A stretch of 32,000 nucleotides of DNA, taken from contig NW_008806298.1 of assembly GCF_000400465.1 (NCBI RefSeq), positions 30,001 through 62,000 of the forward strand. Reading direction: 5' to 3'. Positions 16,636-21,884 of the stretch are shown one piece after another. The notes below the pieces were generated by a model, which saw only the letters and a list, made by a program, of their open reading frames with translations, ran no database searches and was not told where the DNA came from. A program made the position numbers and the translations under genes. How positions within the stretch are numbered: the stretch's first letter is position 1; every line of letters begins with the position of its first letter. The stretch comes from Wallemia ichthyophaga EXF-994. Taxonomy: Eukaryota > Fungi > Basidiomycota.

Positions 16636-18404
16636 TTAAAGATGGTCGTCTCTAGCTTTCTGACGCTTGCGAGAGTCAGCGGGAGCTTCATCGAGACCTC
16701 TCTTACTGCTTTCGTTGTTACCTTGGATGGCCTCGTTGAGGAATTGATCAACACCGAATGGGTCGACGTCCTTTTCAAATTCGACAGGACCTTCACGAGA
16801 TTGTTGCAAATCAGCGCCCTCGAAACCTTTAGTAGTTGCACCTAAACCAAATCTATCATTATCGAGTGCTTTATTTACGCCATCCTCAGTACCACCGCCG
16901 ACGATTTCATCGTCACCATCCTGATTTCTGTGCTTGTAAATTGCAGCAGCAGCGCTACTACCGTGAAAGAGGGGTTTATCATAGAGATTATAAGCCTCAT
17001 CATCGCCGAATGAAGGATTAAGAGATTCTTTGTTATAGAGACGACTATCAAACATGGCCTCTTTGGACATGGAAGGTTTGGCTAGACCTAGGGCAACTTT
17101 CTCGCTGACGTCTCTATTTTGCTCACGTGCCATTTGTTTTGCGCGCTGCTCGTGCCCCATGTGGCTAATACGCATTTCGCGTTCGCGTTCGGTGCGTTTT
17201 TCTCTTCTCATCTGCTCGCGTTGACGGAGAGCGTGGTCATCGCGAACTTTGTCGTTGTCGCCATCGTCGCCATCGGAGTCGGAGCCGGATGCCGACGCTG
17301 AAGCATCCGAGTCGCTACCGTAAGCAGCGAGGTTGGGCATAGACGATCTACCACCACCACCAACACCAGCACTACGCTCCTCGCGCGCTTTCTGCGCAAG
17401 CTGACGTAGTGATTCTTCCTTGCCGAGTTTCTCTTTCTCGGCGAGACGCTGCTGCATGACGTTACGCTGGCGGACTTCATCGCGAGCATGTCTCTCGCCT
17501 ATAAAGAGTGCTTCTGAGAACTTGGCAAAGTTATCGTTGATTTGAACATCCTGCAATCCACGCCCATCCGCTGCGAGACGCTTATCGAGGGGGATAGTAT
17601 AACCTTTGTTGTTCTTCCAGTTGGAGATACAGGGAGGGATCATCCACTCTTTCTGCTCGGCAGCGGTGGCTTTGCGAGGGGGCGAGCGGAGAATAGGTGG
17701 GGGTGGAGAAGGAGGGCCTCTTGGAACTTTTTTGTGTTTGAAGCGGGGTGGTTCGAGTGGATCTTCGACAGCGTCTCGAATTTGTACCACACGCTGCGTA
17801 CCTTCGTTGGGAGTGTAGCGGACATACTGAGCCGCATTCGCTTTTCCACCTACATCTTTGCTGTGAGCAGCTTTGATTTTGTTACCGACAATCTTCTCAA
17901 GGGCTTCTTTGGTCTTTTGTGTTGTGTCAGCGACGGCGGATTCCGAGGGACGGTCGAGGTCCGTAGAAGCACCATCCGAGCGCTTGGAGAGAGGGAGAAC
18001 GTCTTGGAAGGACGACTGGATGAGATGAGCGTGCTCACCACGGTTCTGCTTGGCAATTGCGTCGTATTTCACCTGACCAGAGCCATCGACAGTGAGAGAG
18101 AGGGTTTTGGAACTCTTTGCCTTCTTGCGGCCGAGATCAAGGGGATACTGGGCGGTGTGGCATTCGGGGTAGGCACCGCCATCAGCAAAGTCCTGGGGAG
18201 TGCTGGGTTTCCAGGAGTGGCGGTGGAGATAAGGAGGAGCAGAGAAGCGTTTGGAGAGAGTGTGGTGGGATTGCTGGGAGTGGTCGTCGTCGTCGTCGTC
18301 GTCGTTGAATCGTGGGGCGGGGAGTACGCTGGGGGAAGTTTAGTAAGTGCTATATGAATCCCAGAAACTCACTTGGACAAACCAGTGGAGAAGGCAGTCG
18401 ACAT
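16636..18404 (-). CDS. PRP45: Pre-mRNA splicing factor Prp45/SKIP/SNW1
   Basis: Exons 18404-18373 and 18328-16636 (intron 18372-18329). Motifs LPAP, DFADGGAYPECHTAQYPLDLG, DPLEPPRFKHKKVPRGPPSPPPP, IPPCISNWKNNKGYTIPLDKRLAADGRGL, NLYDKPLF. Confidence 0.96.
18283..18303 (+). repeat. (GTC)7 trinucleotide run within the poly-Asp stretch of PRP45 (minus strand)
   Basis: Read directly from the sequence. Confidence 0.8.
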
Positions 18405-18473
18405 TTTTACTAAACAATTACTTGAGAATTACTTGTGGATGGTGGTTATAATAAAACGATCAAGTGAAAATAA

Positions 18474-20382
18474 ATGTGACTAGTAATTCAATAGAGGGGT
18501 CCTTCTAATAAACCAATCAAGGTCATTCATCGCTCCAGATCCAACATCCTCGTACCTCTTAGGTGGTGAGCGTGTATCTGGGAATGAGATTCGCCAGCAG
18601 AATGGTGAGTCTGGATAGCCAGTGACACAGCCACTAACCACACACCACCAGTCAGATCAGCCTTGGCTATTGCCAATGTCGTTAAATCCTCTTTGGGTCC
18701 CGTAGGTGTGTATTCCCTTCTCAAACCTTCCAAGCCTGGCTAATTGGAATTGATGTAAAGGACTTGACAAGATGATGGTGGATAACATTGGAGTGTGTGG
18801 CTGTCTATTTCTGGCTATTCCAGCTTACTCTTGGCTTCACAGGATGTCACAATCTCAAACGACGGTGCTACCATTCTCTCCCTCATCGAGACTGAGCACC
18901 CCGCTGCCAAGATTCTCGTTGATTTAGCCCAGCAACAGGATAAAGAGGTCGGCGACGGTACCACCTCCGTCGTCATCGTCGCTGCTGAACTCCTCCGTCG
19001 CGCAAACGATCTCGTCAAGAACCGCATCCACCCAACCACTATCATTACCGGTTACAGATTGGCGTGTAAGGAGGCTTGCAAGTTCATGCAGGACAACCTT
19101 TCCTCCAACGTAGACGCTCTTGGCCGCGAATCCCTCATCAACGTCGCCAAAACTTCTATGGCTTCCAAGATCATTGGGAGGTGAGTTGTGTCAGTTGTTT
19201 ATATCCAACCCTAACAGCCACAGCGACGACGAATTCTTCGCTAACATGGCCGTCGACGCTATGCTCGCCGTCAAGACTATCAATCCACGCGGTGAAGTCA
19301 AGTACCCCGTCAAAGCTGTCAACGTCCTCAAAGCACACGGTAAGAGTACCACAGAATCACTCTTTGTCAAGGGTTATGCACTCAACTGCACCGTCGCGTC
19401 ACAAGCTATGAAGACGCGTATCGCTGGTGCTAAAATTGCTTGTCTCGATATCAATCTCCAGAAACAGCGCATGCACATGGGTGTGCACATCACCATCGAT
19501 GATCCTGCTCAGTTGGAGGAGATCAGGAAGCGTGAGTCGGAAATAACCCTCGAGCGCGTCCGCAAGATTATATCATCTGGTGCAAATGTAGTACTCACTA
19601 CGAAAGGCATTGATGATCTCTGTCTGAAGGAGTTTGTTGAGGCTGGTGTAATGGCAGTACGTCGTTGTCGCAAGGAGGATTTACGTCGTATTGCCAAAGC
19701 TACCGGAGCCAGTCTGGTGTCATCCCTCGCCAATCTCGAGGGAGAGGAGACATTTGAATCGTCTCTCCTCGGTCATGCCGAAGAAGTTGCACAGGAGCGT
19801 ATTTCTGATGACGAGCTTATTCTCGTGAAGGGCACCAAGATTGTTAGTGCTGCGTCAGTCGTCTTGCGTGGTGCGAATGATTACATGCTCGATGAGATGG
19901 AACGTGCTTTACACGACAGTCTGTGTGTCATTAAGCGCACACTCGAATCAGGTCACGTCGTACCAGGTGGTGGTTCAATCGAAGTTGCGCTCTCTATTTA
20001 TCTCGAGAACTTTGCCACTACTCTTGGATCACGTGAGCAACTCGCCATTGCGGAATTCGCTCAAGCCCTGCTGGTTATACCAAAGACATTAAGCGTTAAT
20101 GCGGCTAAAGATTCGACAGAATTGGTGAGCAAGTTGAGAGCATTCCATAATGCAGCTCAGTCTGCTCCACATGGTGACCCTAAGAAGGATTTGCAGAATT
20201 ATGGCCTCGATTTGCTTGGTGGTGATATTAGAGATAATGTTAAAGCAGGCGTACTCGAACCTACCGTATCTAAAATTAGATCTCTCAGGAGCGCCCTCGA
20301 GGCTGCCACTTCTCTGTTGCGTATCGACGACGCTATCAAGATGGCTCCAGCGGAGGCTGCTGACGATGGACATGGTCACTAG
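18474..20382 (+). CDS. TCP1: Chaperonin CCT/TRiC alpha subunit
   Basis: Exons 18474-18475 (AT), 18522-18604, 18652-18705, 18761-18792, 18843-19180, 19224-20382 give [63 protein letters not shown]. The start exon is inferred (see findings). Confidence 0.96.
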
Positions 20383-20483: not shown

Positions 20484-21884
20484 TCAAACATAAACAAAGG
20501 AATTTGGTACAAGGGGTTTAGCGAGAGCGACATGGCGTCTAAACTCTTCAGTGAGGACGTAATTGATTTTGTACGTGTGGTACGTGTGGTACGCGTGGCA
20601 CGTATGGTTGACATAGCCCGATCTCATCTGAAAGCAGTTTGTGTTAAGTGTGATAGTACCACTAGTGAGACATTTCTCGAACAGGCCCATAATAGTAGCG
20701 AGAATGCGACGTGCACAACCACCTGGAGCGAGATTGTGACGAATGTGTTGAAGCATTTTGCGTCGATTGATCCCTATACATCGATTGCAGGGGTCGCTAC
20801 ACCCTTTCATGCCCGTGCTTGGTGAGTTACGAAGGAGAAACTGCACGAGCTGATCGAAAGCCATACCATCACCAATTTGCACTCGCCGGACAACCATCAG
20901 CTGGAGGGGGAAAGGGAGAGGGTTCGAGAGGGGCATGTAGTGGCTGTTTCCGTTGTGACTTGTGTGTCCGGTGTAGCCTGTGTATCCATAGTATCCACAG
21001 TATTCCCCGTGTCCTACCCTCCTGTTGAGCCCCTCCTGCTGGCGGAGGTAGAGCTGCGAAAACATCTCGTTGAGGTTGCGGTGGTCGCTGTGCGTGTGTT
21101 CGCGTGTGTGCGTGCTTAAGCTGCCACTCACACCTGCATCTACCACACCACGCTCACGCTCACGCTCGCTACCTGGTGCTGGCGATGTTAGTGGTACGCA
21201 AGTAAATGAGTCGCGCCGAGCGATCTGTGGACGAGTGCGGCGCGGTTGCGTTGGTTGCTCTGCTTGCTCTGCTTGCAGCTGTGCGAGGGCATCGACGCTA
21301 CCAAAGAGACCGTCGTCGCCGGTGGGAGTGCGAGCAGGAGTGTTAGTGTGTGCAGGTGCATGTCCATTAGCACGCCCACGTCCTTGAATAGCAGCAGCAG
21401 AAGCGGCAGCCTGTTGCAATTGCAAGCTGTGAAGGGGCCCTCTGCGCACAATGACGACATGTTCAGAATGCGTGTCAGACTGGCTACCAACACCAACGCC
21501 TGTACTCTCACTCCCGCCCAAAGCGTGACCTACACCGCGAGCGGAATGGCGGCCGCTCACCATCCCAGCCAACCACTTCTCCTCATCCTCCTCACCTACC
21601 CCGTCCTGGTCATCTTGGGAAGGAGAAGCGACGGTGATGTCAACGACGGGATACGACTCCAGATTGTACTGCGTAGGCGAGCGCGTTTGACACTGGCTGG
21701 GATACGTCGTATGTCCTACTCCACCCCAGTTGTGCGTGTGCGTAGGGTGGATCGTCAGGGTGTCGATCGCATCGATGGTAAGGTCCATGTAGAATGGGCG
21801 CAAGAGGTCCGCGTGCGTAGGAAAAGGCGTGGTGTGGTGCGTGTACATTGTGTCTGCGTACTCGATGTGTTGGATGTACGACAT
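20484..21884 (-). CDS. Hypothetical low-complexity protein (466-aa ORF), no family recognised
   Basis: Long ATG-initiated ORF filling the gap between TCP1 and MOG1; rich in H/T/G/R repeats, with a Cys/His-containing C-terminus. A possible in-frame intron at 21017-20901 is unresolved. Confidence 0.55.
   Translation of the reverse strand: MSYIQHIEYADTMYTHHTTPFPTHADLLRPFYMDLTIDAIDTLTIHPTHTHNWGGVGHTTYPSQCQTRSPTQYNLESYPVVDITVASPSQDDQDGVGEEDEEKWLAGMVSGRHSARGVGHALGGSESTGVGVGSQSDTHSEHVVIVRRGPLHSLQLQQAAASAAAIQGRGRANGHAPAHTNTPARTPTGDDGLFGSVDALAQLQAEQAEQPTQPRRTRPQIARRDSFTCVPLTSPAPGSERERERGVVDAGVSGSLSTHTREHTHSDHRNLNEMFSQLYLRQQEGLNRRVGHGEYCGYYGYTGYTGHTSHNGNSHYMPLSNPLPFPLQLMVVRRVQIGDGMAFDQLVQFLLRNSPSTGMKGCSDPCNRCIGINRRKMLQHIRHNLAPGGCARRILATIMGLFEKCLTSGTITLNTNCFQMRSGYVNHTCHAYHTYHTYKINYVLTEEFRRHVALAKPLVPNSFVYV
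20571..20606 (+). repeat. Degenerate 9-mer tandem repeat (GTACGTGTG)-like x4, encoding HTC-HAY-HTY-HTY in the orphan ORF
   Basis: gtacgtgtg gtacgtgtg gtacgcgtg gcacgtatg. Confidence 0.75.

Follow-up and report, generated by a model that had tools for sequence, protein, structure and literature searches.

The TCP1 start codon of Wallemia ichthyophaga is probably split by a short intron

From which codon is the TCP1 gene of Wallemia ichthyophaga translated, given that its genomic DNA holds no intact in-frame ATG in front of the conserved coding sequence? The window analysed here is a stretch of 32,000 nucleotides from strain EXF-994 (contig NW_008806298.1, positions 30,001 to 62,000 of the forward strand), and all positions below refer to it unless a contig is named. 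Reading back from 18523, the TCP1 frame meets its first in-frame stop at TAA 18484 with no ATG in between, which agrees with the statement of an earlier note on this DNA. Only three ATGs lie within 18300-18530 (18354, 18439, and 18474). The last of them opens the hexamer ATGTGA (18474-18479), so unspliced RNA reads ATG TGA, and an in-frame TAA (18471-18473) stands directly 5' of its first two bases. When these two bases are joined to 18522 onward, the sequence becomes ATG TCA TTC and the product begins with MSFIAPD.

The segment between the two parts (18476-18521) has GT at its 5' end and AG at its 3' end, as expected of a short fungal spliceosomal intron, and its removal would create the in-frame ATG. 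The ATG-TGA and the 46-nt intron GTGACT..CTAAT..AAG that the earlier note had described are thus present in the letters. The CTAAT motif is also used in intron 3 of the same gene, and 18521 closes the first AG downstream of the branch point. A CAG acceptor 17 nt 3' of the AAG is a possible competitor, and the context of the split-start ATG is poor in W. ichthyophaga, with T at -3. On sequence evidence, it is very likely that the TCP1 start codon is split AT/G by this short spliceosomal intron and that the product is MSFIAPD... with 555 aa. The features of the locus are collected in Table 1.

Table 1. Features of the TCP1 start region and its neighbourhood (a slash marks a proposed splice boundary)
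Feature	Position	Strand	Remarks
TCP1 exon 1, coding part	18474-18475	+	AT, first 2 bases of the initiation codon; same AT before the donor in L001, L002, and L018
TCP1 intron 1, predicted	18476-18521	+	46 nt, phase 2 in codon 1, donor GTGACT, acceptor AAG; read from sequence
TCP1 intron 1, probable branch point	18504-18508	+	CTAAT, branch A 14 nt 5' of the 3' splice site; from sequence
TCP1 exon 2	18522-18604	+	G completing ATG, then 27 residues and first base of Val
TCP1 remaining introns	18605-18651, 18706-18760, 18793-18842, 19181-19223	+
TCP1 remaining exons	18652-18705, 18761-18792, 18843-19180, 19224-20382	+	TAG stop at 20380-20382
Start-codon intron, W. ichthyophaga	window		AT/GTGACT..46 nt..AAG/G
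Start-codon intron, W. mellicola	L001		AT/GTGAGT..53 nt..AAG/G TCT
Start-codon intron, W. hederae	L002		AT/GTAAAA..45 nt..CAG/G
Start-codon intron, Wallemia sp. 'sp5' (Logan SRR25399871)	L018		AT/GTGAGC..43 nt..CAG/G
Downstream AG (CCAG/), acceptor of the public model	18537-18538	+	inside conserved coding sequence; use removes SFIAPD
Upstream ATG, start of the 561-aa model	18439-18441	+	strong context (GTGGATGG); W. ichthyophaga-specific
GATCAAGT motif	18459-18466	+	conserved block in the short leader/first exon of TCP1
PRP45 (SKIP/SNW), divergent neighbour	16636-18404	-	574 aa; 99% identity to W. ichthyophaga E3P78_00292
PRP45 exon 1 (MSTAFSTGLS-)	18373-18404	-
PRP45 intron after exon 1	18329-18372	-	44 nt

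Spliced with five introns, the gene reads through to its TAG stop as a 555-aa product that is 94% identical to W. mellicola XP_006957705 over the full length, with equal length and N-terminus, and by this identity the protein is CCT-alpha/TCP1. Introns 2-5 agree in codon and phase with their counterparts in W. mellicola and W. hederae. Compared with the W. ichthyophaga assembly GCA_004918065.1, 5 of the 1944 bases of the gene are different. Together with the PRP45 match (Table 1), this identifies the window as W. ichthyophaga, and its G+C content agrees (PMC3849046).

Conservation in relatives, which the earlier note had named as a check, bears the arrangement out. The layout AT/GT...AG/G is common to four Wallemia lineages (W. 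ichthyophaga, W. mellicola, W. hederae, and sp5), with introns of 43-53 nt. Every model made of an ATG and one GT-AG intron between the PRP45 start and TCP1 exon 2 was enumerated, and exactly one of them, AT/G, is common to the four lineages; in W. hederae it is the sole possible model of this kind. The chance of an ATGT 40-60 nt 5' of a fixed acceptor is ~0.08 per lineage by a rough estimate, not a shuffle test. The AT/G layout is more than chance. Intron 1 and the spacer upstream are unalignable between Wallemia species, and branch-like motifs (CTGAC, CTGAA, CTAAA, and CTAAT) are found at the equivalent intron position in the other lineages.

Exon 2 carries a clear coding signature in five lineages, the fifth being the AT-rich lineage sp4 described below. 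Variation is synonymous only in 22 of its 27 codons, a single amino-acid change is found, and the variable sites fall 4, 1, and 23 on the first, second, and third codon positions. The signature begins at the first codon after AG/G. Outside the genus, TCP1 of Mrakia, Cryptococcus, and Microbotryum (proteins mapped) has no start-codon intron, the first intron being at codon 12/13 or none occurring before codon 54, and because of this the split start is regarded as specific to Wallemia. Another intron of the gene, an ancient one in phase 1 near codon 231, has a different distribution. W. mellicola, sp4, Mrakia, Cryptococcus, and Microbotryum all have it, and it is absent in W. ichthyophaga (where the window has the uninterrupted exon 19224-20382), W. 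hederae, and sp5. This absence suggests a shared intron loss that marks a W. ichthyophaga/W. hederae/sp5 clade.

The lineage sp4 is an AT-rich (33% G+C) Wallemia-like lineage represented by ENA/Logan metagenome contigs (L008-L017), and it recurs in many metagenome samples. Its TCP1 reads ...CATTCTAATTGGTTGATTACAG/ATA ATG AGT TTC ATT GCA CCT GAT, where MSFIAPD is read from an uninterrupted ATG and a TGA stands in frame four codons 5' of it. Because the sp4 codon is contiguous, this support for the Met-Ser-Phe-Ile start needs no splice model. Just 5' of this ATG, sp4 has a CTAAT as branch motif and an ACAG as acceptor at the acceptor position of the other species, with a GTTAGC donor 53 nt upstream. 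The same intron therefore appears to be kept in sp4 as a 53-nt 5'UTR intron (L008 2071-2123), the start codon standing three bases inside exon 2. The serine codon beside the shifted start is TCN in the split lineages and AGT in sp4. In the neighbour-joining tree of TCP1, sp4 is placed next to W. mellicola, in the PRP45 tree it is basal, and outgroup-polarised shared substitutions divide 7 to 5 on whether the split or the intact state is ancestral. Elsewhere in the sp4 gene, the intron at codon 170 is lost and the intron at codon 231 is kept.

The sp4 sequence also bears on the possibility that W. ichthyophaga has no start-codon intron at all and uses a non-AUG start within 18487-18522, or an overlooked exon further upstream. 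A near-cognate ATA does lie in frame at 18508. However, the in-frame stretch 5' of the Ser codon shows no conservation and cannot be aligned, sp4 has a canonical ATG directly 5' of Ser-Phe-Ile, and the PRP45 start codon is only 60-79 bp off, which leaves hardly any room for an upstream exon. This explanation is extremely improbable. In contrast, the earlier proposal that splicing creates the AT+G initiation codon gains from the conservation in four lineages, from the coding signature right after AG/G, and from the intact ATG of sp4. Given the usual action of methionine aminopeptidase and NatA, a Met before Ser is normally removed. The peptide expected from the split start is therefore (Ac-)SFIAPD..., not the MSFIAPD that the earlier note had named as the proteomics target.

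The public annotation of W. ichthyophaga gives another start. The deposited TCP1 protein has 561 aa (EOQ98879.1 and TIA... entries) and begins with MVVIIK..., and it is rebuilt exactly from ATG 18439, the donor at 18476, and the acceptor at 18538. The earlier note had found ATG 18439 out of frame with the acceptors tried there; it missed that the frame is open with donor 18476 and acceptor 18538. If transcription began upstream of 18439, this ATG would open an out-of-frame uORF of 25 codons overlapping the real TCP1 start. The 561-aa model has in its favour that its frame is open and internally consistent, that it begins at a normal ATG in strong context, and that its acceptor is CAG; besides EOQ98879.1 it is deposited in many strain annotations. 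Its origin is ab initio prediction by GeneMark-ES, not transcripts, and it was propagated afterwards by MAKER with that proteome as evidence. The model drops 16 nt whose evolution in five lineages is that of coding sequence, and it passes over the first AG after the branch point. Moreover, its N-terminal peptide has no counterpart in relatives, as W. hederae has no upstream ATG and W. mellicola and sp5 have no equivalent model. That the public model (intron 18476-18538) represents the true main product is very unlikely. It could be a minor alternative 3' splice-site isoform, but most likely it is an artefact of gene finders that are unable to model a split start codon, and the public N-terminus is probably wrong.

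Related models in the genus vary in the same region. The JGI model of W. mellicola CBS 633.66 (XP_006957705.1 / EIM22465.1) can be placed on its genome only if codon 1 contains a phase-2 intron. Discordant models are found in other W. mellicola strains (562 aa, MTADTVIR..., and 505 aa, MMVDN...) and in W. hederae (554 aa, 'partial'), because gene finders handle split start codons badly. Three further starts were considered and set aside. ATG 18439 with the donor GTGAAA at 18464 and the acceptor at 18496 would need a 33-nt intron, which is too short, and this model is not conserved; the MTADTVIR model of W. mellicola has no branch-point motif and is absent in other species; and ATG 18354 lies inside the PRP45 intron. 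The exact 555-aa product of the split-start model is absent from the protein collection, and a search of the same collection with the spliced 85-aa N-terminus returned no transcript-derived Wallemia fragments (best match 71% identity, none from Wallemia). A 164-aa metagenomic fragment represents the cluster to which the full-length W. ichthyophaga TCP1 proteins belong, so that these are hidden from a full-length homology search; clustering under fragment representatives could hide other proteins likewise.

The anatomy of the TCP1 start, its conservation, and its coding signature are direct observations, and we infer that splicing takes place at exactly these sites and that the intron is constitutive. 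Under the split-start reading, exon 1 would supply only a short leader and AT. The phase-2 GT-AG intron in codon 1 would then be removed so that the G at 18522 finishes the AUG, and translation from the AT/G junction would yield the 555-aa CCT-alpha. The arrangement would be inherited, being common to W. ichthyophaga, W. hederae, W. mellicola, and sp5, and the start codon and the intron boundary would have moved relative to each other inside the genus Wallemia. Unspliced TCP1 RNA would be non-productive and presumably a target of nonsense-mediated decay, like that of most 5' introns.

The leader of TCP1 is confined by its divergent neighbour. The distance from the PRP45 ATG to the TCP1 AT/G is 69 bp in the window (18405-18473). 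This spacer measures 60-79 bp in the four split-start lineages (L001 3941-4000, L002 2887-2952, and L018 3245-3323) and 202 bp in sp4. Either both genes have extremely short 5' leaders or their transcripts overlap. Conservation within the spacer is limited to two blocks, GATCAAGT and a more upstream CTTGTGG, which reads CTTGTCA in W. hederae. GATCAAGT is located 8-12 nt 5' of AT/GT in W. ichthyophaga, sp5, and W. mellicola and is degenerate in W. hederae and sp4. It may be the transcription start, the position of which we infer, or a core promoter element; if it is the start site, ATG 18439 would be excluded from the transcript.

The spacer also contains a 12-bp unit (GAATTACTTGAG-like), with two copies in the window (18414-18437) and three in GCA_004918065.1 (L007 3961-3995). 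On the PRP45 side, the JGI model of W. mellicola CBS 633.66 (530 aa, L001 2201-3940) starts at an internal ATG. In W. mellicola the gene has a conserved exon further upstream (MSTAFSTGLT-), which differs synonymously between species and is followed by a short intron; other annotations use this exon (563-574 aa).

The splice signals of intron 1 were compared with those of 15-16 other Wallemia introns mapped from annotated TCP1 and PRP45 proteins, which is a small sample. An ORF-joining intron finder run on the window was discarded, as its output was mostly false positives (one of them inside a TCP1 exon) and it missed known short-exon introns. Intron 1, with 46 nt, is of ordinary length for the genus, as 16 other mapped introns measure 42-55 nt; the genome mean for W. 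ichthyophaga introns is 61 nt (PMC3849046). The spacing of the branch point is also usual for Wallemia and lies inside the 7-30 nt expected between a CTRAY-like motif and the 3' splice site, and an AAG acceptor is frequent (5/16 introns). The donor departs from the consensus at +5, which is G in 15/15 other introns and C in W. ichthyophaga TCP1 intron 1. In W. hederae the start-codon donor GTAAAA has A at +5. On the other hand, the donors of W. mellicola (GTGAGT) and sp5 (GTGAGC) have G at +5 and are consensus-like. The weak donor reported earlier is therefore real in W. ichthyophaga and W. hederae but does not extend to W. mellicola and sp5. At +4, all four start-codon introns have A, which leads to an immediate stop, while only about half of the other donors would do so.

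These features raise the question of whether the intron acts as a regulated gate, in which stress causes its retention, ribosomes meet AUG-UGA, and CCT-alpha synthesis is turned off. Such regulated retention of TCP1 intron 1 is speculation. Two features are in line with it: the donors of W. ichthyophaga and W. hederae lack the +5 G found in 15/15 other introns, and all four start-codon introns have A at +4 with its immediate stop. In W. ichthyophaga, intron retention is the commonest class of alternative splicing, and of the genes spliced alternatively, about half showed retention at only one of two tested salinities (PMC3849046). However, donors are consensus-like in W. mellicola and sp5, and the four lineages are non-independent samples. 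The earlier note had inferred that retention of this weak-donor intron would switch off CCT-alpha translation, and this functional reading is not supported: ATG-TGA (ATG-TAA in W. hederae) appears in unspliced RNA because the donor of the phase-2 intron begins with GTGA or GTAA, so the stop is automatic (PMC2911113), and almost any retained 5' intron would abolish the protein, which makes this no special property. In addition, the start-codon introns of Yarrowia are the most efficiently spliced class and belong to highly and stably expressed genes (PMC13309789), and on/off control would be unlikely for an essential housekeeping chaperonin. Taken with these points, a stress-regulated gate is improbable.

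A selected form of such control can be imagined as well. The immediate-stop donor would be kept (+4 A, 4/4), loss of the otherwise invariant +5 G would be tolerated, and splicing efficiency, perhaps responsive to salt or temperature in this extreme halophile, would set CCT-alpha output; ATG 18439 with the acceptor at 18538 could then add a second isoform with a different N-terminus. We hold this scenario to be decidedly improbable, and a new regulatory mechanism is not established. The intron-split start itself, by contrast with the gate, is a known kind of gene structure, and an orthologous W. mellicola model already exists.

The closest known case is that W. mellicola JGI ortholog, which shares the AT/GT...AG/G layout (phase 2, codon 1), the MSFIAPD start, and the length of 555 aa. 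It differs from W. ichthyophaga in its intron, which has 53 nt and a consensus GTGAGT donor and is not alignable, and its split was never highlighted. Outside the genus, Yarrowia lipolytica likewise has spliceosomal introns inside or immediately after the ATG. In this species, 47 genes have a first coding exon consisting of one base of the start codon (Mekouar et al. 2010, PMC2911113), and 42 start-codon introns were reported with the 5' splice site right after A, T, or G (NAR 2026, PMC13309789). A phase-2 GTGAGT donor there also gives an immediate in-frame stop in unspliced RNA (PMC2911113). Unlike Wallemia, Yarrowia belongs to the ascomycete yeasts; its introns are longer, and their branch point abuts the 3' splice site. 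Its commonest reported split is A/TG, whereas the basidiomycete Wallemia has AT/G, and no orthology is implied by the likeness.

The 5'UTR introns of Yarrowia often end directly 5' of the start codon (PMC13309789). Among the lineages studied here, sp4 appears to carry such a form, GTTAGC..CTAAT..ACAG/ATA ATG. The window differs from it in that the boundary falls after the second base of the codon, which leaves no intact in-frame ATG in the genomic DNA.

The adjacent AUG and UGA also recall the AUG-stop minimal uORFs, such as the AUGUAA of Arabidopsis NIP5;1, which belong to the mature 5' leader, precede an intact main ORF, and modulate that ORF. The resemblance to TCP1 is in letters only. The ATG-TGA of TCP1 occurs only in intron-retained RNA, which has no downstream TCP1 start codon.

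Two things are new at this locus: a probable correction to how the gene is annotated in W. ichthyophaga, and a start codon that appears to have moved across an intron boundary within one genus. The deposited 561-aa CCT-alpha has been copied into ~20 strain annotations and very likely carries a wrong N-terminus. Across Wallemia, four different TCP1 models are wrong or incomplete, because gene finders handle split start codons badly, and users of these proteomes (orthology, BUSCO-type scoring, and N-terminal analysis) inherit the error. Moreover, the genus offers a clean comparative case, with the AT/G split in four lineages and, in sp4, an intact codon three bases past the putative acceptor beside a serine codon changed from TCN to AGT.

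Just 3' of TCP1, an imperfect tandem repeat (GTACGTGTG-like, about 4 copies) is found at 20571-20607. It is located inside or at the end of a convergent minus-strand ORF (20484-21884).
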